Assembly: GCA_003427395.1 (NCBI GenBank)
Contig: BFEA01000004.1
Span: 806,316-870,315 of the forward strand
DNA from: Chara braunii
Lineage: Eukaryota > Plantae > Charophyceae
DNA: 64,000 nt
Direction: 5' to 3'
Shown here: in pieces, positions 9,221 through 61,019 of the stretch
Numbering within the stretch: position 1 is the stretch's first letter
Layout of the letters: every line of letters starts with the position of its first letter
Made by a program: the position numbers and the translations under genes
Notes under the pieces: model-generated
Told to the model about the DNA's origin: nothing
The model's database searches: none
What the model saw: the letters and a program-made list of their open reading frames with translations, nothing else

Positions 9221-9280
9221 GTCAAACAGAGCTGCCCGGTAAACCGTAGGCAGAGAGGGAGAAGAGGACAACAAACGAGG
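9221..9280 (-). mobile_element. Short end fragment of the hammerhead-carrying repeat family, embedded in (TA)n
   Basis: GTCAAACAGAGCTGCCCGGTAAACCGTAGGCAGAGAGGGAGAAGAGG matches 21874 onward; (TA)n on both sides. Confidence 0.85.
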
Positions 9281-12010: not shown

Positions 12011-12098
12011 TTTCAACGGAGCTGTCGCTGCTCACCGAGGATTTGATGCTTCTCCACCGTTACCCGTTTCAAAGAAAACGACAGCAACATTATGCACT

Positions 12099-12195
12099 CA
12101 TCCGTTGAAATTGGAACGATACAGAGAAGGGGAAGATTAGCATGGCCCCTGCGCAAGGATGACATGCATAAACCGAGAAATGGTTTAAAATGTTT
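12099..12195 (+). pseudogene. U6: U6 snRNA-derived copy, 5' stem-loop missing, 6-nt insertion after ACAGAGAAG
   Basis: CATCCGTTGAAATTGGAACGATACAGAGAAG(GGGAAG)ATTAGCATGGCCCCTGCGCAAGGATGACATGCATAAACCGAGAAATGG matches the plant U6 sequence. Confidence 0.92.
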
Positions 12196-20609: not shown

Positions 20610-21582
20610 GTAAGAAGATACATATTTCTTCTTCTTATTATTATTCATATTCTCTTCATCCCTTCCATATCTACCTCCTTGGTTTCCAGAGAGATGGGAG
20701 ACTTGGCAACTATTTCAGGAAGGCTTCTCCCAGGTTCAGAATCAACATTGTATTTGGGGCTATTGGGGGTTGGGGGGGATTGCTATCAGGTCAACTACTA
20801 TATTATCGACTTTCTCTCTCCTCATCCTCGTCTCTCTCCTCATCATCTATGACCATCTCTCCCCATCTGCGTGATACACCAGGCGGGACTTCGCCTATGT
20901 ATGTCTCCCCTCCTTGTGGCTCGAGTGTCCATTGGTGAGTGGATGTGTCTGAGTCACACGGATCAGATTGATTAATTTCCAGACTTCTCTGCTGCATTGT
21001 ATTCGCATCTTTCGTCACTTTGGTTTCTGCTCATTGCCCATCTGTTGATCCGCATGCATCACATGGCGTGATACTATGTGTGCTGGCTGCCGCAGTATGT
21101 CTGCTGGCTGCATCACTCTTGGGCTGCATGCATATTAATTCCGTGTGGGTTTGAGAGCCCGCTTCAATATAGAGATTAATCGGACACTAGAGAAAAGGCT
21201 TGAGTCAAGTGAAGAGTGATAAGTAATGAGTAATGAACATATTAAAATATTATTAATTCAATAAGAGGTTAATTAAATTAGGGGACTAGATTTAATTTAA
21301 TTTAAACATACGGTAGCCTGCCGTTCATTCTGCCGATTAGGCGAGGCTACGGTGCCCGGGGTGGGCTGAACTACTGGGCTGGGTGCAGTAGTGGGATGGG
21401 TCAAGTAGTATTTGAGCTGACTGCAGTACCATGTAGGCTGGGGGAAGGAAGTACTACGTGGCCTGGGGATGGTACTATGTAAGCTGGTTGTGTGCTACTA
21501 TGTGGGTACAGTGCAGTACTAGAGCTGCCCGGTAAACTGTGGGCAGAGAGGGAGAAGACGACAAGAAACGAGGGGCTGTGAC

Positions 21583-21642
21583 AAACTGTTTCGTCGGATT
21601 TTCACCTACCTACTCATCAGGAGGCTGAACCCTCAACAGTCT
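21583..21642 (-). ncRNA. Type III hammerhead ribozyme, degenerate copy (stem II disrupted by a 4-nt duplication)
   Basis: Minus strand AGACUGUU GAGG GUUCAG CCUC CUGAUGA GUAGGUAGGUGAAAAUCCGAC GAAA CAGUUU. Confidence 0.7.
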
Positions 21643-21940
21643 CCAGCTGTGACAGACCTTTCTTTGTTTCGTGGGTGTTTTGCTGGCTTGTGATGGGGTG
21701 TGAACCGAGAGTCTGTAGAGTTTTCCATCTGGTGTGGGTGACTGATAGTCTGCTTCGATTTTTGTCACAGGTACCTTGAGGGCAGTGGTTAGTGCCCACC
21801 TCAGGGTATCAGTTGCCGGGCAGTCGTTGATGGTTAACCACAGCCAGGATATATATATATATATATATATATAGTCAAACAGAGCTGCCCGGTAAACTGT
21901 AGGCAGAGAGGGAGAAGAGGACAACAAACGAGGGGCTGTG

Positions 21941-22000
21941 GCAAACTGTTTCGTCAGAGTTTCACCGACTCATCAGGAGGCTGAACCCTCAACAGTCTGC
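21941..22000 (-). ncRNA. Type III hammerhead ribozyme, intact
   Basis: Minus strand GCAGACUGU-U / GAGG GUUCAG CCUC / CUGAUGA / GUCGG UGAAACU CUGAC / GAA-ACAGUUUGC. Complete catalytic core, 9-bp stem III, 4-bp stem I, 5-bp stem II, GUU cleavage triplet. Confidence 0.88.
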
Positions 22001-22547
22001 AGAATCCCCTAACTGATTACACTGTAAGTGATAATCCACCTTAACCCTGGCTGTGGTTAAGCATCAACGACTGCCCGACAACTGATACCCTGAGGTGTGC
22101 ACCAACCACTGCCCTCAAGGTACCTGTGGCAAAAGTCAAAGCAGAGTATCACTCACCCACACCAGATGGAAAACTCTACAGACTGTCGGTTCACACCCCA
22201 TCACAAGCAAGCAAAACACCCACAAAACAAAGGAAGGTCTGTCACAGCCAAGTCAAACAGAGCTGCCCGGTAAACCGTAGGCAGAGAGCGAGAAGAGGAC
22301 TACTAACGAGGGGCTGGGACAAACTGTTTCGAAGTATAGGTCACATATCGTCACATGAATATCAGAGCGCAAAGGTGAAAAAAACAGAAGAAAACAAGAA
22401 AAAAATAATTCGTTTTTTTATCTTCTTTCTTACAACTCCCCCTGTTCAGAACCTCTTGCGTACAAGGCCGCCCACGTGAATGTAGGTTGAGCGGCGGCTG
22501 CCCCCACCCCCGTGTGTCATATTGACCCACATATATATATACATATA

Positions 22548-22595
22548 TCAAACAGAGCTGCCCCGTAAACCATAGGCAGAGAGGGAGAAGATGAC
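22548..22595 (-). mobile_element. Further end fragment of the hammerhead repeat family, next to (TA)n
   Basis: TCAAACAGAGCTGCCCCGTAAACCATAGGCAGAGAGGGAGAAGA, preceded by ATATATATATACATATA. Confidence 0.8.
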
Positions 22596-23375
22596 TATAT
22601 ATTGTCACGTAAGTATGAACCAAGAGAGCACACTGATAAAAAACAAAAGACAAGGGCACAATAGTAGTTAAGACACTTTCTTGTTAGTTTTGGTGTGAGC
22701 ACAACTTTGTGCATGGCCTTCCCCAACATGGTCTTTCGGTTTTTCTTTTGCTTTGCAAACGGGTCCACATGGCCCAACTGCCAAGCCTCGTCCAACCCCA
22801 AAAAAGTTTGGAAAAAAATACGGTAACTGCCAGTTTTCCCATTTTTCCCAAGAGTGAGCGAGCTAGTAGTGATTTAAAAACTTTAAACCGGAAAAAAATC
22901 GAACAGATTCTTTCCCCGCCCACGTGGCTGAATGGTATACCTATGTAACTGCTGGTAAACAGATCTGAGATCAAATAATGACGGAAGCAAATGAGTACTA
23001 TAAAATAACTCCGAATTACCAAGTATTTTTGTTCATAGAACTGGCCGGTTCCGGGTAATTCTGAGTTTTTTTTTTTATTATTTGTTTACAAAAAAAAGCT
23101 CTCTTATAAGAGACACCACAAAACATGGTATTTTGTATCATCTTGTAAACAAATACCATATTGCCAAGAAATAAAAGAGGGACCACATTTTGTATTATAA
23201 GACAGACTATGAAACATGGTATTTCTTGACATTATGGTATGTTATTATATTACTCTTGTACACATGTTTTGTAGTCTCTCTTATTTCTTGCCTCGCTGAC
23301 TTATTCTCGGCAATATCATATTTTGTAGTGTGCTCGAGTCGAGAAAAGGTCTTTCGAAGCATGTGTCTGACTTAC

Positions 23376-23527
23376 CTGCCAAGTTTTTCAAGACAAGTAG
23401 CTTTTCCTATTGCCGCTTCACCATGCTCTCCAGTCTTGAATTCGCATTTGCCCATGGCTATCTCGAAATGCAAAAGTGCCTTTGCATACTGCTGCTCGCC
23501 CATCAGCCATTTACCGAACTTGAGTTC
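23376..23527 (-). CDS. Internal exon of the host TPR-like gene
   Basis: cag|GAACTC...GGCAG|gtaag. 152 bp encoding ELKFGKWLMGEQQYAKALLHFEIAMGKCEFKTGEHGEAAIGKATCLEKLG(R); phase matches both neighbouring exons. Confidence 0.8.
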
Positions 23528-24345
23528 CTGCTCCATTATGTCGAACGCATAACGAAAATTCCAAAGATATTAATCAACTTTAAATGAAAGCCCGACTGTG
23601 CATGGGCAATTCTTCTGCATAACTCAGATTTTGAAATAAACAATTATCCCAAAATGTAGAGCAGATGTGTAATGTTCGCAGGTCCTTTTTTTCCTGCTTT
23701 GATTTTCAAGTTTGTATTCTGAACATCACTGCGCTATGTCAAGTCTACTACCACTGTACGAGAGTAAGTAGTAGCGATCTTCATTTTAAAAAATAGTGAG
23801 ATGAATAATTGAAATGAAAGTGTGTATGATTTCTTTCAAATTCAGTCCACCACTTCCAGGCTGTCCAATCAAACTCATACAATAGACGTTGACAGAAGGC
23901 AAACAAGGAAGACTCCTCCCAAAGGTGACCCTGAAGATTAACATAGCCGTCCAAAAAGAAGAAAGATAACCATCCCCAAACCACGTCAGTTGTAGTGCCA
24001 TCAACAGGTGGGAGGGGGGGCCGGGGGGGGGGGGCAAAAGGAAGAACAATGCCAATATCCCAGAGACCTCAGAAAATTTTCACCGGACAACCCATGGCAG
24101 CCCTCCGTGCAGAGATCTTATGTCCAAACCCCCAGACTCCCACCCCAGAAAAAAACTGGTGGCCACCCACAGACATTACTTCATCAACAAGACGGCCCAT
24201 GCTACAAAACAGGGCAAAGAATTAGGCCATGTATAAAAAGCCAAACCAGCAAAAAACATCCATCCACAGAGAAAGAGTAACTCACTAGTATGAGCCCGAT
24301 CCTAACCGCTCAAATCTGCCAAGACAGAGAGCTAGCAAGACCGGA

Positions 24346-24380
<35 letters not shown>

Positions 24381-24426
24381 GTCATATTCGCTATATTTAA
24401 AATAAAAAAAAGCATGACTGCACCAG

Positions 24427-24459
24427 ACTGTTTCGTCAGACTTTCACCGACTCATCAGG
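24427..24459 (-). ncRNA. Truncated hammerhead core (CUGAUGA-stem II-GAAAC) of the same family
   Basis: Minus strand CCUGAUGAGUCGGUGAAAGUCUGACGAAACAGU; stem I is replaced by a dinucleotide repeat. Confidence 0.65.
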
Positions 24460-25025: not shown

Positions 25026-25158
25026 AACAGAACAATTGGAATATAATCTTAGATTCGTAACAGAACAATTGGAATATAATCTTAGATTCTTAACAGAACA
25101 ATTGGAATATAATCTTAGATTCTTAACAGAACAATTGGAATATAATCTTAGATTCTTA
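25026..25158. repeat. 33-bp tandem repeat x4
   Basis: AACAGAACAATTGGAATATAATCTTAGATTCTT units. Confidence 0.92.
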
Positions 25159-27482: not shown

Positions 27483-27590
27483 GTCCTCGGGGACACCCGT
27501 TAAAATTGGAACTACACAGAGAAGGTTAGCATGGCCCCCGTGCAAGGATGACACGCGTGAATCGAGAAATGGTCCAAATTAAAAAAAAAA
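27483..27590 (+). pseudogene. U6: Full-length U6 snRNA-derived copy with A-rich tail (retrocopy)
   Basis: GTCCTCGGGGACACCCGTTAAAATTGGAACTACACAGAGAAGGTTAGCATGGCCCCCGTGCAAGGATGACACGCGTGAATCGAGAAATGGTCCAAATT followed by A10; no T-run terminator. Confidence 0.92.
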
Positions 27591-36123: not shown

Positions 36124-39100
36124 ACTAAACATAGCCACCTGGAATATCAGGGGGTTATGTGACACGACCAGAAGGGGTAAAAGATCGAGGCTGAAGGCGT
36201 GGCTTCACCGTCAGAAAGTTCAGATAGCATGCATACAAGAGACCAAACTGAACGAAAAAAAGATTACCGAACTTGGTAACTGGTGGGATGGCCCCCAGCT
36301 CTGGTCCCCAACAATGGGGATCAGAGGTGGAGTAGGAATATTGCTGCACAGAGACCTCCCTGCCCAAATCCTGGACTCCGCAACAGATCTGTGGGGCAGG
36401 TGGGCCTGGGTAAAGCTCTCAGCTTTCGGATGCGACTGGGCCATTATGACTGTGTATGCCCCGGTGGACAGAGCAGAGCGTAATAAGTTTTTCCAAGATC
36501 TGGTATCGTACGCCCCTGATGTGGACAACCTGCTGATCGCTGGCGATTGGAACTGCTCCCTTTATGACCTGACAGGCTCGTCAGGTGGCACACCGGACAT
36601 CCATTCCTTGCTGGAATTCTCGTCAACCTGGAACTGTGTGATGCTTTTAGACTAGTCCACCCCACAGACCCAGGTTTTACCTGGGGTTCGGTTGCCAGCA
36701 ACGGTAACAATTCAGGTTGCCTTAGAAGGCTAGTCTATGCACTACTCAATCCATCATGGTGGGATGCTCTCGTGAATATCGAAGTAATTAGAAATCCAAC
36801 CTCAGATCACTACCCTGTCAAACTTACCTTTCAAATGCTGGACACATCAGACCGTGGAAATGGATTCTTCAGACTCAACGTGCAAAATCTCAAGGACCCA
36901 GGCCGAGAAGAGAAGTTTTTCGGCAACTGGCCAAAGGCCCAACACCACTTCCGATCCCTGGGAGATTGGTGGGACGCAGGTACATGCATAGCAGCTAACA
37001 TTCTCAATGTATTCTCTCGGATTATGGCTGCTGAGCGAAACAAGGATGAAGCAGATATCTTGAGGGACTTGCAGTGGGTTGAAGAACGCATGCAAGCGCA
37101 CCCCATCTTAGCGAAGGTTTGGGCACCCGAAAGGATTAAATTGCTAAATAAATGGGACGCTGCACAGCAGGAAAAATAAGACGAATGGGCTGAAAGGTTG
37201 ACAGTGAAAGGTATATCTATGTATGATCGGATGACTAAGGAAGCATTCCTGAAACTTCTCCCTAACAGATCCGCACAGTCCATGAAGGTGCTCAACCACC
37301 CATTCGTGCCCACAGCAAGAGTGGCCACCTCCTCTGAGGCTCTATGTGATTATGCAGCTACTTATTTCAAGGATATCCTAACCTCTCGCAGACTCAGGGA
37401 ACCCCCGGACTCAAACCTTGCCGTCGACTCAGATCACTGGAACAATGTGTCAGTCAGACTCAAGAACAGCGACAAATTGGCCCTAGACTGACCCGTCACA
37501 ACGGAAGAGGTGGAAGAGACTGTAAACTGCATGGCCAAAGGTAAATCCCCAGGCAGGGACGGTTTGCCTGTGGAGTTCTACACGCAGTTCGGTAAGTTGT
37601 TGTTCCCCCACCTGGTTACCATTTTCAATGAGGTTCTTACCGGTGGAAAGTTGTCGAGTTTCATGACACATGGCATTATCACACTCATGTACAAAAAGGG
37701 AGACAAAGCGGAAATCCGCAACTGGAGACCCATGTCACTGTTGAACGTATCATATAAGATCTTAGCTAAACTCTTAGCAAATAGACTTGGTAGATGTCTA
37801 CCCCAGCTGGTTGAGCGAGACCAAGCTGCATTTGTTCAGGGCAGGTTTATTTTCGATAATATCGTCACTACCATTGAGGCATTGGAGTGGATAGACCAGG
37901 AGAATCTAGACATGGCAGTGATGCTATTAGATCTAGAGAAAGCTTATGACAGAGTTAATTGGGCCTACGTTCTTACTACCTTAAAGCACCTGCAGTTTGG
38001 GTCAAACTTATGTCGCTGGGTGACTGTTTTATACGTCTTCTCCTCTGCATCAGTCGCAGTGAATGGGCACATCTCAGCCCCGTTCACACTTTCCAGATCA
38101 CTCAGACAGGGATGCCCGCTGGCACCCCTCCTCTTCGTGATCCAACTAGAAGTGTTAGTCACAAATATCAGGATGCACCCTAACATCCAAGGACTGTCAA
38201 CGCAGCACCTCGACTGTCAGGTCAAAGCACTCGCAGATGATCTGATGGTGATATCTGAGAACACAGTGGACTCCCTGCAGGCTGTTAAGTCATGTTTGGT
38301 TGAATACTTCACTCTGTCCGAAGCCGCAGTGAATTGGTCCAAGTCGGTTTTTTTCTCACCGGAAGGTTTCACTCTCGCAGTTGAATAGGGAATGAAAAGA
38401 ATTGCAGGCGGATAATCCGAGAGATACTTGGGGGTGCAGGTCACCCTCGGGCACTATGCGGAGGCCCAAAACAACCTACTTCAGCAAAAGATAGTGCACC
38501 GGATAAATCTCTGGGGCCCAGCCCAGCACCTGTCCCTCTTTGGTCGAGCCTTAGTGGTAAATGTAGCACTGTTCGCCCTTCTCTGGTACGTGGGTACTAT
38601 CAGAGCTTTGGGCAAACAATTAGTGAAGGTCGTCCGCAGAGTGACAGCGAAGTTTTTGTGGAAATCATTTGCGGGCGAAAGTGCAGGTTTCATCTCCAAA
38701 GTTGCATGGGACTTGATCTGTTGCCGCACGACTGAAGGGGGGCTGGGTCTTCTGGACCCGGCCAAGCAGAACCCTGCGCTGTTAATCAAATGGATCATTA
38801 AAGCCATAGCCTGCGAGGAGGAAGACCACTGGATTCTCCTTGCGGAACAGACACTAGCGCAGGACTGGAACCTCTCGAGAACTAAGGACGTATGGACATG
38901 CATGATGATGGACTCGTACTTGCGCAGACACACTTCATCGCCGTTCTGGCTGGACGTGCTGAAGGCTTGGCGCACAGTGGGCCCACGCCAGAGGACCCCC
39001 CCGTCTACAAGGGAGGAAGTACTATTGCAACCAGTCTTTGACAATCCACTCATCCGAGACCAGGAAGGACACTCATTTTCAGCAGGTTGTGAAGCTTCCG

Positions 39101-56725: not shown

Positions 56726-59700
56726 GTGGAGCGGATGGTGGACAAACTCCTGGAAGACCATAATGACTTGATGAACCTGAAGGACATCCTGGCGTCGGCG
56801 CCAAGGCTCCGTGGTGAGTTGAAGGGGCGGCTGTCGCGAAGGCTGGTGCCAAATGTTCATCTGAGTACGGTCTTGCCTAGAGAGGTGGAGTGGACTAAGG
56901 CAGGGACAAGGATGGATTGGAAATGTGTGGCATGCGGGCAGGTGGATTTGGTGATAAGGAACCAGAAGTGTACTGGGATGGTGGACACGGGCGAGGAGAT
57001 GAACATCATCAGGGAAAAGGAGGCGGTGATGATAGGTATGGAGATCGACCGCTCGGACCACCGCATGTTGCACGGCGCTAACTGCAAGGCCGCCTTTTGC
57101 GGCACAGCGTCAAACGTGATTATAGAGATCGGGAAGGTGCGAGCCAGAACGTGCTTCTTCGTCATGCCCGACGTCGATCACCCCATCCTTCTGGGGCGAT
57201 CGTTCCTGTGCCGAACGGAAATGTTGATCTTCAACAAGCACGATGGGACGATGATCCTGCTCCTGTGCGACCCGGCGTGTGGAAATTATGAAGTTATCAC
57301 CTGCCGGAACACGGGGCCGGGGAGCGGGAGGAATAGGCCCAATCTAGGCTCGTTCACCTTCGAGGAATCAGAGAACGAGCAGAGACGGCTTTGGGAAGTG
57401 CCCGAGGAGGAAGATAGGGCTGAGGTGCTGACATTGAGCCTCACGGATGTTAATAAGGCCATGGAGGTGGTATCGGCTCACGACATGGCGGATCCGGAGG
57501 CCATTAAGGCATTGAGGGAACAAGTTTTGGAGAACCCTCAGGTGGGAGAGGTGGAGTTGGTGTATTTGCTTCCGGGAGGGAGGGGAGGCCCTGCGATGGC
57601 CCAGGCCCGAGCGACAAGTCGGTCTTTTTTAGGGGAGGGCTTAAGCAGGGTTCCCAAAGGCAGTACAAGACCATAGATAAGAAGTGTCGCCCAGTTCCCA
57701 TGCTCGTCACAGAGGATGAGGAAGCCTACTACGAGTGGGAGCGAGGGTTGATACGGCGTATGCGGGAGCACTCGTTGGCCGGGCTGGGCCATATCAACGA
57801 TGAAAATGAGGGGAAGCTGATAATTGGGGAGCCCGACTTTCTGTCGCCCCATGAGAGAGCATTGGTGGTGGGGCTGATGAAGAAGAGACACCGCGTGTAT
57901 GCATTCAACGACGGCGAGCGTGGCAGGCTGGATGTGGACAGGATCCCGATGATCAGGATTCACACGGTTCCACATGAACCATGGAATCTAAGGGGCGAGC
58001 GGTACCCCAATCCGGACGAGGAAAAGATGGTGGTGGACTACCTGGACGGCAAGATGCGGACGCACGTGGCCGATTATTCCAGTGGGCCGTACGCGTCGCC
58101 TTGGTTTTGTTTTATTAAGCCAAATGGGACGCTAAGGTGGGTGCAAAACTTACAGCGGTTAAACGCGGTGACAATGCAGGACGCGGGAGGATTGCCGAAC
58201 GTGGACGCATTGTCAGAATCGTGCGCAGAGAGACCTATAATCTCGCTTATAGACTTTACTCGGGGTATGACCAATTCCCCGTATATCCGCCGGACAGGCC
58301 CGTAACGGCAATGCACACTCCCACAGGGCTGATTCATATGAACGTGGCACCTCAAGGTTGGACGAATGCAATGGCGATGGTGCAAAGGCATATGATCAGA
58401 GCCATGCAGACAGTCAGCCCATATATCACCCAGCCCTATATCGATGACCTGGCGGTCAAGGGTCCGAAGGAGAAGGAGGAAGACGAAGTGATGCCCAGTG
58501 TGCGGTGCTTTGTCTGGAAACATGTTAAAGACATCGATCAGGTTCTAAGGTTATTAGAGGAGCATAACCTGACGGCGAGTGGCCCCAAGTCGAAGCATTG
58601 TATGAGGGAGGCCACGATTTTAGGCTTTGTCTGTAATGAGAGTGGGTGAAGGCCTGATGTAAGGAACACAGACAAGATTCTCGAGTGGACGGTGCCCTTT
58701 CGCTCAATAACAGATGTGAGGAGCTTCCTTGGGACGTGCGGATTCTGGAGGAGCTTCGTGAAAGACTTTGCCACGAAAACGAAGCATTTAAGGAAGTTGG
58801 TGCGCCAGGAGCAAGAATGGGTCTGGGGCGAAGACCAGGAAGAGGCGGTCGGTAGGATGAAGGGATAGTTTAAGGAAGGAGGCTTGGTATTGGGAGCGCC
58901 AAACTATGAGGCCACGGAGGAAAGACCATTTGTCATTGAGACGGAGGCTGGGCCAACTGCCTTGGGAGGAGTCCTGATTCAGGCAGATACTGAAGGGAAG
59001 GAGACGCCACTAAGGTTCGAAAGTCGTACACTCAATACAACTGAGAGGAACTACTTTCAGTTCAAGAAGGAGACGTTGGCGGTACTTCATTGCCTAAGGA
59101 CCTTGCGGAACTATGTTTTTGGCAGGAGGCTCATCTTGAGGGTGGACCCTACTATGCTGGCCTGTTCCCTAAAGAATTATACTCCATCTGACCCAACCGT
59201 CGCAAGATGGTTGACCTACATTTGGATGTTTAATGTCGAGTTGGAAAGGATCCCAGGGAACAAGAACAGGGCAGATGGGCTAAGCTGCATCAACTGGGAC
59301 GGATCGGTGGAGGAGTCAATAGAAGACACGCCGCCAGTTGATGGGTTTTTGGATCAAGAGGAGGACGTCCACCTACACATAAACGAATGGTCCCTGCGAG
59401 TGCCCAGTTGCGTCAGTCACCCTATATGGCTGGCACCGAAGGGGTACGGGAAGAAGGAAGAGTTAGTCCTCAAGCCCTTTCAGGAGGAGGATCCGTGGGG
59501 AAGTAAGGATGTTGGTTGGATGATGAGGTTGGCGTTGGCAGGTACGCACTGTCTGGTGGAGGAAGTGAGAACAATAGAGGAAGGCCCCACTCAGGTAGAG
59601 GAGCATGAGCAGCTAATGGGAGGGATGTACCCGCTCACCAATACACTCCTGCAAGGAGACTTCAACCGGAAGGGCTCGTTCAGTACCGAGGAGAATGAGA

Positions 59701-61019
59701 TTCTGGTTCCCGAAAGCCGAGACGATGAATTCGAGGAAGGAGAAATCAAGGAGGCGTTTCGGGCGGAGGAGTACGATGGGATCTACCAGGAATTGGGGTT
59801 GCTCCTATCATGTGAAATGAGGGATAGAGATGCGAGTGCCAAGGCACAGAAGATGAGGCACCTCTATGTGGTAAGAGATGGCCACTTGTTTATAAAGCGG
59901 CATGTCGGGAACCCCAGGAGGATCGTATGTGGGAGAAACCGGCAAGTTGATATCATAGCGGCCCTACACGATGGTGTAGCAGGGGGCCACAGAGGAGTAA
60001 GTGCCACGTGCGCAAAGATAAGCGAGCTCTACCATTGGGACGGGATGCTGACGATGGTTATCAAATACTGCCGGTCCTGTATACCTTGCCAAGAGAGGGC
60101 GGCACAAAGGCCCGGAGAACCCCTACACCGAAGGTTAGAAAGGGAAGTGGGTGCGGTCGTACACCTGGACCTGTTATTCATGCCAGCAGGGGAGAATGGG
60201 TGTAACTACATCTTCGATGCACGGGATAACCTTACTGGGTTTGTGGATGGACAAGCTATCTGGACGAAGACTGACCCGGTTTTGGCGAACTGCATCAAGG
60301 AGTACTACCTGCGGTACCCTTTTGTCAGGGAGTTCGTGATGGATCGAGGATCAGAGTTTACCTGCAATGAGGGGAGGACGTTGCTTGCAGTGTACGGCGT
60401 AGTGGCCAAATATACTACGGCCGCACACCCTCAAGCGAATGCTCCTGTGGAGAGGGGGCACAGTACCATCACGAATCTCCTGGCTAAGTGAATAGAGGGC
60501 AAACCTGGTCAGTGGTCGAAGTTCCTACGGGCAGATTTCTTCGTGGAGAATGTTACTGTAAAGAGGACTACCAACTACGCGCCGGCCACGCTATGGTACG
60601 GGAGGCATGCCACCTTTCCCATAGAAAGCTTTATGAAAACGTGGAGGCTCCAGGACTTGGAGGTGAACGTGTCCTTCGAAAAACTGCTCGATATTCGGGC
60701 GCGGCAAGTGGGGGCGACCGAGGAAAGATTGCGAGAGGCCGCTGGTCAGGTAGAAAGGAGCCGCATGGAAGATAAGATGAGGTGGGATCAGATGGCACGA
60801 GTAAGAAAGGAGCAATTGGCAGTAGGGGATGTCGTATTATTGTACGACTCCTCTTTGGAAAAGCAATGGTCGAGGAAGCTTGACAAGAGATGGTTGGGCC
60901 CCTATAGGATATTGCGATGCGGCGAGTTTGGGGCCTATCAGATCGAGGAGCTGGACGGGACAGGCTGGCAGGATTGGGTATCGGAGACAAGGCTGAAGAA
61001 GTTCGTGGCTAGGGAATAG
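56726..61019 (+). pseudogene. pol: Ty3/gypsy pol: protease-RT-RNase H-integrase (copy B), multiple disruptions
   Basis: GMVDTGEEMNII; PYASPWF, PQGWTNA, YIDDL; ETEAG..ALGGVL, KETLAV; HDGVAGGH, MDRGSEF, GPY. Confidence 0.95.

Follow-up and report, generated by a model that had tools for sequence, protein, structure and literature searches.

The window considered here, i.e., the whole 64,000-nt stretch of Chara braunii DNA that was analysed, carries around position 22,000 a cluster of hammerhead-related segments which, followed along the minus strand, comprises an X fragment, another repeat, a truncated copy of a hammerhead plus X, the segments Y and S, a complete hammerhead motif (HHR1) with its X, a (TA)12.5 microsatellite, an inverted Y and a second hammerhead copy (HHR2), again followed by X (Table 1). 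Upstream of this cluster and on the same strand lies an expressed exon (23375-23540) that runs from an ATG to a GT donor and encodes a TPR-like peptide. Elsewhere in the window there are plus-strand open reading frames (37510-38388 and 56726-60491) with RVT_1, aspartyl protease, RNase H and integrase, which makes them Ty3/gypsy-like; two U6 snRNA genes, also on the plus strand (12080-12194 and 27483-27583, with 72.6 and 79.8 bits, both above the Rfam threshold), the former of which carries an insertion and has a weaker 5' hairpin; and a 33-bp tandem repeat in four nearly perfect copies (25026-25158).

Table 1. Segments of the hammerhead family and associated features, in coordinates of the window
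Feature	Position	Strand	Basis
Solitary X-only fragment, (TA)n on both sides	9221..9280	-	Alignment
X tail of the HHR2 copy, without the last GTTTGAC	21521..21582	-	Alignment
HHR2, core intact, 4-nt duplication (UAGG), A.G mismatch in helix II	21583..21642	-	RF00008, 32.4 bits, E 3.8e-4
Inverted Y copy, abuts HHR2	21646..21848	+	94% complementary to 22046-22248
(TA)12.5 microsatellite, remnant of the insertion target between two compound insertions	21849..21873	.	Repeat finding
X, 66-nt 3' tail, ends GTTTGAC directly before (TA)n	21875..21940	-	Alignment; homologous X ends in reads
HHR1, complete type III hammerhead motif	21941..22000	-	Sequence reading, RF00008 match, folding, core-pattern count
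S, family segment of 45 nt, immediately 5' of the ribozyme	22001..22045	-	Same order in contig L001; joint 22046>22132
Y in sense orientation, 5'-truncated here	22046..22251	-	Loose ends, joints, L001
Y subpart B, 85-nt piece, absent from many family members	22131-22047	-	Joint skipping 85 nt; L001 without B
Y subpart A	22248-22132	-	L001 has A-S-HHR-X
5'-truncated copy: X preceded by the final 15 ribozyme nt, from CGAAAC on	22253..22331	-	Sequence comparison, alignment
X-only fragment, 5'-truncated inside X, then TA-rich sequence	22548..22597	-	Alignment
Fragment of a related family, starts at CUGAUGA, other tail ending ATATGAC	24381..24458	-	(CA)n on both sides

The hammerhead of HHR1 can be read directly from the minus strand. 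Its helix III is open and has nine base pairs (GCAGACUGU/ACAGUUUGC); the 5' strand of this helix is followed by a GUU triplet, whose U17 is unpaired; helix I (GAGG, loop GUUCAG, CCUC) is capped and has four base pairs plus a G.G; and the two core boxes, CUGAUGA and GAAA, flank a likewise capped helix II (GUCGG, loop UGAAACU, CUGAC) of five base pairs, one of them G-U. Cleavage is predicted after GUU, between 21991 and 21990, so that G11 corresponds to position 21990. A complete hammerhead, its type III topology and this very cleavage position had all been proposed in an earlier, sequence-only reading of the locus, and they stand: every helix and core element could be read, helices I and II are capped with helix III open, and our own reading of GUU arrived at the same site. 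Furthermore, in a search of 5 kb, HHR1 aligned with 54 of the 54 model positions of Rfam RF00008 (Hammerhead_3) with 42.6 bits and an E-value of 4.9e-7. The comparison with this model, which had been put forward as a check, thus gives a full-length alignment, but with a score below the curated gathering score of 48.5 bits, which is why HHR1 is absent from a default Rfam scan: the hammerheads appear here only with E-value thresholds, and at gathering thresholds none is reported in the window, only the two U6 genes. For the core pattern CTGATGA-N8-36-GAAAC, the window has three occurrences where 0.26 would be expected, and none of 100 shuffles reaches three.

In terms of folding, the hammerhead of HHR1 is calculated at -20.1 kcal/mol and the minimum free energy structure at -22.5 kcal/mol, the competing fold being better by 2.4 kcal/mol. 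In the family-majority sequence (U45>C, C60>U), the minimum free energy fold is the hammerhead itself, kept perfect by the pair G35-C45; according to this folding model, it is the U45 of HHR1 that favours the competing fold and weakens the hammerhead. HHR1 differs from the family majority at only two positions of the ribozyme (21941 and 21956), and only two ribozyme positions have an alternative letter in at least 10% of the reads.

The sequence-only reading had also stated that two sister copies keep the core, and this is true for one of them. HHR2, on the same strand and 356 nt downstream of HHR1, retains both core boxes and, like HHR1, the NUH triplet (GUU), with predicted cleavage between 21635 and 21634, although it is a damaged copy given its duplication and its helix II mismatch. 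The copy near 24427 lacks helix I and the 5' strand of helix III, and it is not a complete ribozyme but a 5'-truncated fragment of a related family in (CA)n, since a CA run immediately precedes its first letters, CUGAUGA, its tail is another one, and (CA)n follows that tail. A 22.0-bit Rfam alignment that would make it a full-length hammerhead was rejected as spurious, the supposed helix I being the CA run.

The pair formed by HHR1 and HHR2 had been taken as a tandem non-LTR architecture, a view that does not survive the dissection of the locus. The local spacing is 360-378 bp, yet the 203-nt segment in the middle is inverted, and the only direct repeat is the 126-nt unit formed by hammerhead and X, with an inverted piece of the same element between its two copies; the strand bias of the reads flips over this inverted Y. 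Tandem Repeats Finder (TRF) detected no 360-380-bp tandem at the locus. Because Y is inverted between the two ribozymes and no tandem was detected, ribozymes lying 356 nt apart do not amount to a monomer array: what looks like a tandem goes back to a pair of compound insertions into a (TA)n tract, one of them with a damaged ribozyme. The first is a partial tandem, in that the truncated copy at 22331-22253 is joined head-to-tail to Y without any intervening (TA)n; the second combines an inverted 5' piece with a direct 3' piece. Between two fragments of the hammerhead family, at 22386-22529, there is another very high-copy repeat, with a summed DNA depth of 75,000-178,000, sense-biased RNA and agreed continuations of its own at 22470 and 22530.

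The family as a whole can be described as a series of Y, the 45-nt S, the hammerhead and the 66-nt X, in which the distance to the family 3' end is 126 nt from the start of the ribozyme and 66 nt from its end. The aligned copies have CTCTGTTTGA(C) as their common 3' end and begin at different positions, and the local copies, the solitary fragment at 9221-9280 and contig L001 form a nested 5'-truncation series whose GTTTGAC end abuts (TA)n. Target-primed reverse transcription, as known for non-LTR and Penelope-like elements, typically leaves nested 5' truncations and a constant 3' end at a microsatellite, and the combination found here therefore points to a linear RNA copied in that way. This agrees with the description of the locus, in the sequence-only reading, as part of a small non-coding mobile repeat: a high-copy, 5'-truncated family with a fixed 3' end was found, and no LTR. 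Two candidate features of the 3' tail gave nothing beyond chance, since the X 3' end, considered as a decayed copy of the ribozyme 5' arm, aligned locally no better than shuffles (p 0.14), and X showed no excess of structure over shuffles (z 0.45), so that no 3' recognition hairpin is claimed beyond a 6-bp stem seen by eye.

Sequencing reads extend this picture. On 21450-23600 we placed the raw reads of two stranded oligo-dT RNA runs together with a DNA and an RNA contig set, one of each, accepting reads at 90% likeness or more. The summed DNA word depth, a rough measure that is not a copy number, was 1.0-1.4 million over the hammerhead and X, about 0.3 million over Y and about 10 for unique sequence, which indicates very many copies and a 5'-truncation gradient. 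Loose ends at the homologous X end (22252/22254) enter (TA)n in 325-903 reads and 35-88 DNA contigs. Those at the 5' end of Y (21646) continue into one agreed upstream sequence, so the family must be longer than the local 378-bp spacing suggests; the local Y is called 5'-truncated for the same reason, i.e., because the family continues further upstream elsewhere. Across the family, copies are mostly solitary and 5'-truncated, and in most members S is joined directly to A (loose ends and the joint 22046>22132). Subpart B, which contains an internal imperfect hairpin and is present in both local Y copies, is missing from most RNA reads and from L001, with a DNA depth as high as that of its flanks, and may be either a subfamily marker or a small nested insertion.

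Contig L001 was the single match in a metagenome scan and is a polyadenylated, transcript-like contig, in which A, S, the hammerhead and X (without the 85-nt B) lie between TA repeats, with tiny inverted X ends beside the 5' end of a copy. Its second copy has at least 120 nt more of family sequence upstream of Y, which is non-coding, and a search of a protein collection with an antisense open reading frame of this contig gave no matches. The L001 ribozyme has three helix-breaking changes, from which it follows that single copies decay neutrally. The stem changes seen in L001 and HHR2 are disruptive and not compensatory, as judged from four readable copies of a highly uniform family. In soil and rice-paddy metatranscriptomes (runs X18-X20), 7-9% of the sampled words of 21400-22400 were present, which suggests that RNA of the hammerhead family, from Chara or relatives, is present in those habitats.

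Is there any sign that the ribozymes cut? The library orientation is fixed by the upstream exon, covered only by reads with the first mate on the plus strand, and with this orientation the family RNA is about 5:1 ribozyme-sense in the stranded oligo-dT reads. From the X bin to the cleavage-site bin, the coverage by sense RNA drops to 0.40-0.43, with antisense RNA at 0.81-1.0 and DNA at 1.3; in the step that follows, towards Y, sense RNA, antisense RNA and DNA do not differ. Such a sense-only drop is compatible with self-cleavage and subsequent capture of the 3' product by oligo-dT, and equally with an internal sense start site. Of the 5' junctions to (TA)n inside the ribozyme, those with the best support are at 21962, 21985 and 21989/21990, and the third of them coincides with, or is one base away from, the first base of the predicted cleavage product. 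Each of these three junctions lies in A/U-rich sequence, so they could also have come about by microhomology with (TA)n, with no cleavage involved. In one RNA contig, the X 3' end is joined directly to 21990. In the oligo-dT reads, neither read starts nor read ends were flagged as piling up at the cleavage site. The junctions, the coverage drop and the lack of a pile-up all bear on self-cleavage, and they are suggestive rather than decisive.

The position of the cluster relative to its host gene deserves consideration as well. An RNA contig of 1184 nt starts with the upstream exon, and low-level minus-strand reads run through the whole hammerhead cluster (within 21450-23600); given this exon and these run-through reads, the ribozymes probably sit in sense orientation within an intron of an expressed gene. 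This could evoke a ribozyme exapted by the host to regulate the pre-mRNA of the surrounding gene, as HHR1 lies in sense downstream of the exon and reads cross the region, yet HHR1 has only about 3-4 differences per 170 nt from the majority of a very high-copy family, which marks it as a recent neutral insertion. Its own U45 weakens the fold and there is no sign of orthologous conservation, so that exaptation is very improbable.

Instead, we consider it probable that 22600-21520 is a (TA)n tract filled by insertions of the hammerhead family, and that this family is a tail or derivative of Penelope-like elements, made by target-primed reverse transcription. The family would likely be a 3' module, such as a tail or pseudo-LTR, or else a non-autonomous derivative of the hammerhead-bearing Chlamys-type elements, a link that is held as likely and not as firm because it derives from shared hallmarks: a microsatellite insertion bias, 5' truncation, a partial tandem, an adjacent inverted truncated copy and a hammerhead in the 3' region. 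Under this explanation, a former microsatellite would have been filled by at least two compound insertions and by fragments of a single retroelement family, whose linear RNA would be copied by target-primed reverse transcription. On a nicked (TA)n target, synthesis would begin at the constant 3' end of the RNA (GUUUGAC, adjoining UA repeats), and in most cases it would break off early. The partial tandem at 22331-21875 could have arisen through template jumps, and the inverted and direct pieces at 21848-21521 through a twin-priming-like event. In the source elements, the ribozyme would probably cut read-through or tandem transcripts and thereby set the RNA 5' end at G11; here we infer a Penelope-like partner, cleavage in vivo and a role for that cleavage. 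HHR1 itself would be a young, almost consensus, dead-on-arrival copy without demonstrated host function. Against the Penelope link, no Penelope-type reverse transcriptase or GIY-YIG open reading frame adjoins any copy within the 64-kb window, and the sole reverse transcriptase matches belong to the Ty3/gypsy-like elements, which are unconnected to the hammerhead family; the type I topology given for Penelope hammerheads in the accounts at hand also speaks against it.

Several features of the locus could also be accommodated by a true non-LTR retrozyme, in which tandem transcripts would be cut at the two hammerheads and ligated into a circle of about 356 nt (21990 to 21635), the circle being the transposition intermediate, as in animal retrozymes. 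The two same-strand hammerheads 356 nt apart, the sense-biased RNA whose coverage falls across the ribozyme and one RNA contig in which the X 3' end is joined directly to G11 (21990) are in line with it. The unit between the ribozymes, however, is not a repeat of its neighbour, since its Y is inverted and TRF found no tandem; HHR2 is damaged; and the family 3' end is GTTTGAC at (TA)n and not the cleavage site, most copies being solitary and 5'-truncated. Joints that go back (22287>21912, 22289>21906, 22292>21547 and others) were considered as circle junctions and discarded, as they map to homologous X copies: the mappable ones show offsets of 3-7 nt between different X copies and are therefore paralogue switches or small indels. 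A circular RNA is required by none of the 15 joints listed out of 268, which come from oligo-dT libraries. Since the raw reads are exclusively oligo-dT, which is poor for circles, the retrozyme is weakened by these data rather than dismissed, and we regard it as unlikely. Two established retrozyme organisations were also compared with the locus and rejected. That of plant LTR retrozymes would call for two LTRs of about 350 bp with a type III hammerhead in each, for which there is only the 126-nt direct repeat, and for a tRNA-Met primer binding site (PBS) beside the 5' LTR, of which no match with up to 2 mismatches was found between 20 and 26 kb of the window (5 occur in the whole window, with 4.5 expected by chance). 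Metazoan-type arrays would consist of regular head-to-tail complete monomers, in place of which there are solitary truncated copies and an inverted Y, with no tandem in TRF.

A further alternative is a SINE-like or LINE-tail family moved by a LINE with a (TA)n-type tail and unrelated to Penelope-like elements, the hammerhead being a passenger or a processing signal. LINE-type enzymes also produce 5' truncation, microsatellite tails and twin-priming inversions, and twin priming is established for L1. The 5' truncation, the microsatellite 3' junctions and the inversion with a direct 3' part are accordingly classic LINE footprints, and the window has no Penelope open reading frame. On the other hand, in the accounts at hand, eukaryotic retroelements with hammerheads are Penelope-like elements, Terminons and retrozymes, and LINE-type elements carry HDV-like ribozymes at the 5' end; moreover, hammerhead-bearing Chlamys elements exist at very high copy number in C. 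braunii itself, according to Craig et al. (PMC8557442). A LINE-driven family is thus quite unlikely, and the derivation from Penelope-like elements is preferred.

With regard to its meaning, the presence of a type III hammerhead in a streptophyte alga, on a non-LTR element of Penelope style, is a noteworthy variant with a bearing on the origin of the ribozymes of plant retrozymes, and this topology in a non-LTR setting is the one aspect that is mildly new; it is noteworthy because Penelope hammerheads have been described as type I, and type III has been described in plants and circular agents. The locus itself adds little, being an ordinary, nearly consensus copy, and hammerhead Penelope-like elements of C. 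braunii were published in 2021. A bolder possibility, which we find rather doubtful, is that the family constitutes an independent, ribozyme-processed mini-retroelement, whose 3' product of about 116 nt (from G11 to GAC) would be recopied into microsatellites by a Penelope-like enzyme. If this were true, it would be the first non-LTR “retrozyme” of the green lineage. The type III hammerheads found in plant LTR retrozymes and in viroid-like RNAs, for which horizontal transfer has tentatively been proposed (PMC7761336), would then have a source that is vertical and linked to Penelope. The Chara family, if Penelope-linked, would connect the world of type III hammerheads (retrozymes of flowering plants and plant-infecting circular RNAs) with that of type I (Penelope-like elements and animal retrozymes), and would offer the plant ribozymes a vertical origin.

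Compared with the hammerheads gathered in RF00008, which include phage examples, the Chara copy has the same core, the short capped helix I and a UGAAA-type loop 2, and differs from them in its score below the gathering threshold, in having GUU and not GUC at the cleavage site and in the G.G atop helix I. Scans of viral sequences returned only unrelated phage hammerheads. Related phage contigs (L002:3333-3387, minus strand, and L004:3887-3941, plus strand) carry a type III hammerhead with 53.6 bits, above the Rfam threshold, just upstream of a start codon. This hammerhead agrees with the Chara family majority in every letter of helix II and loop 2, probably because both have converged on the UGAAA-type loop, which is a common one.

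Angiosperm LTR retrozymes (Cervera et al. 2016, PMC4918200) are similar to the Chara family in being non-coding retroelements of the green lineage with a type III hammerhead, whereas the latter has no LTRs of about 350 bp, no tRNA-Met primer binding site and no Ty3/gypsy-type organisation. The non-LTR retrozymes of metazoans (Cervera and de la Pena 2020, PMC7229834), which a recent preprint argues to derive from Penelope pLTRs (Li et al. 2026, 10.64898/2026.07.22.740005), are likewise small non-coding hammerhead repeats without LTR, PBS or PPT; they are of type I, form regular tandem arrays and yield circular RNAs, unlike the mostly solitary, truncated type III copies of Chara. In the accounts at hand, the hammerheads of Penelope-like elements are in general described as type I, and type III is placed in plants and their circular RNA agents.

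The closest known counterparts are the Chlamys-type elements, and the suggestion that the family was possibly undescribed is not supported, since hammerhead-bearing Chlamys elements of C. braunii with matching features were published by Craig et al. 2021 (PMC8557442). That work reports canonical hammerheads in two Chlamys-type subclades of Penelope-like elements, one of them in C. braunii, where Chlamys-2_cBra has a “canonical 3'-HHR” and Chlamys families attain very high copy number. It also reports microsatellite targeting, with (CA)n and (C)n for Chlamys and (TA)n for Naiads, and describes Naiad and Chlamys elements as 5'-truncated, at times in partial tandem or with a truncated copy inverted beside them; its main text gives no ribozyme topology and describes no mini-elements of about 80-380 nt. 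The copies studied here differ from those elements in that none carries an open reading frame, and they are likened to them by hallmarks and not by consensus sequence. With these hammerhead-bearing elements, Chlamys-2_cBra and the PLE-X type, they share the host, Chara braunii, the hammerhead near the 3' end, the very high copy number, the insertion into microsatellites, the strong 5' truncation, the partial tandems and the truncated copies inverted next to others.
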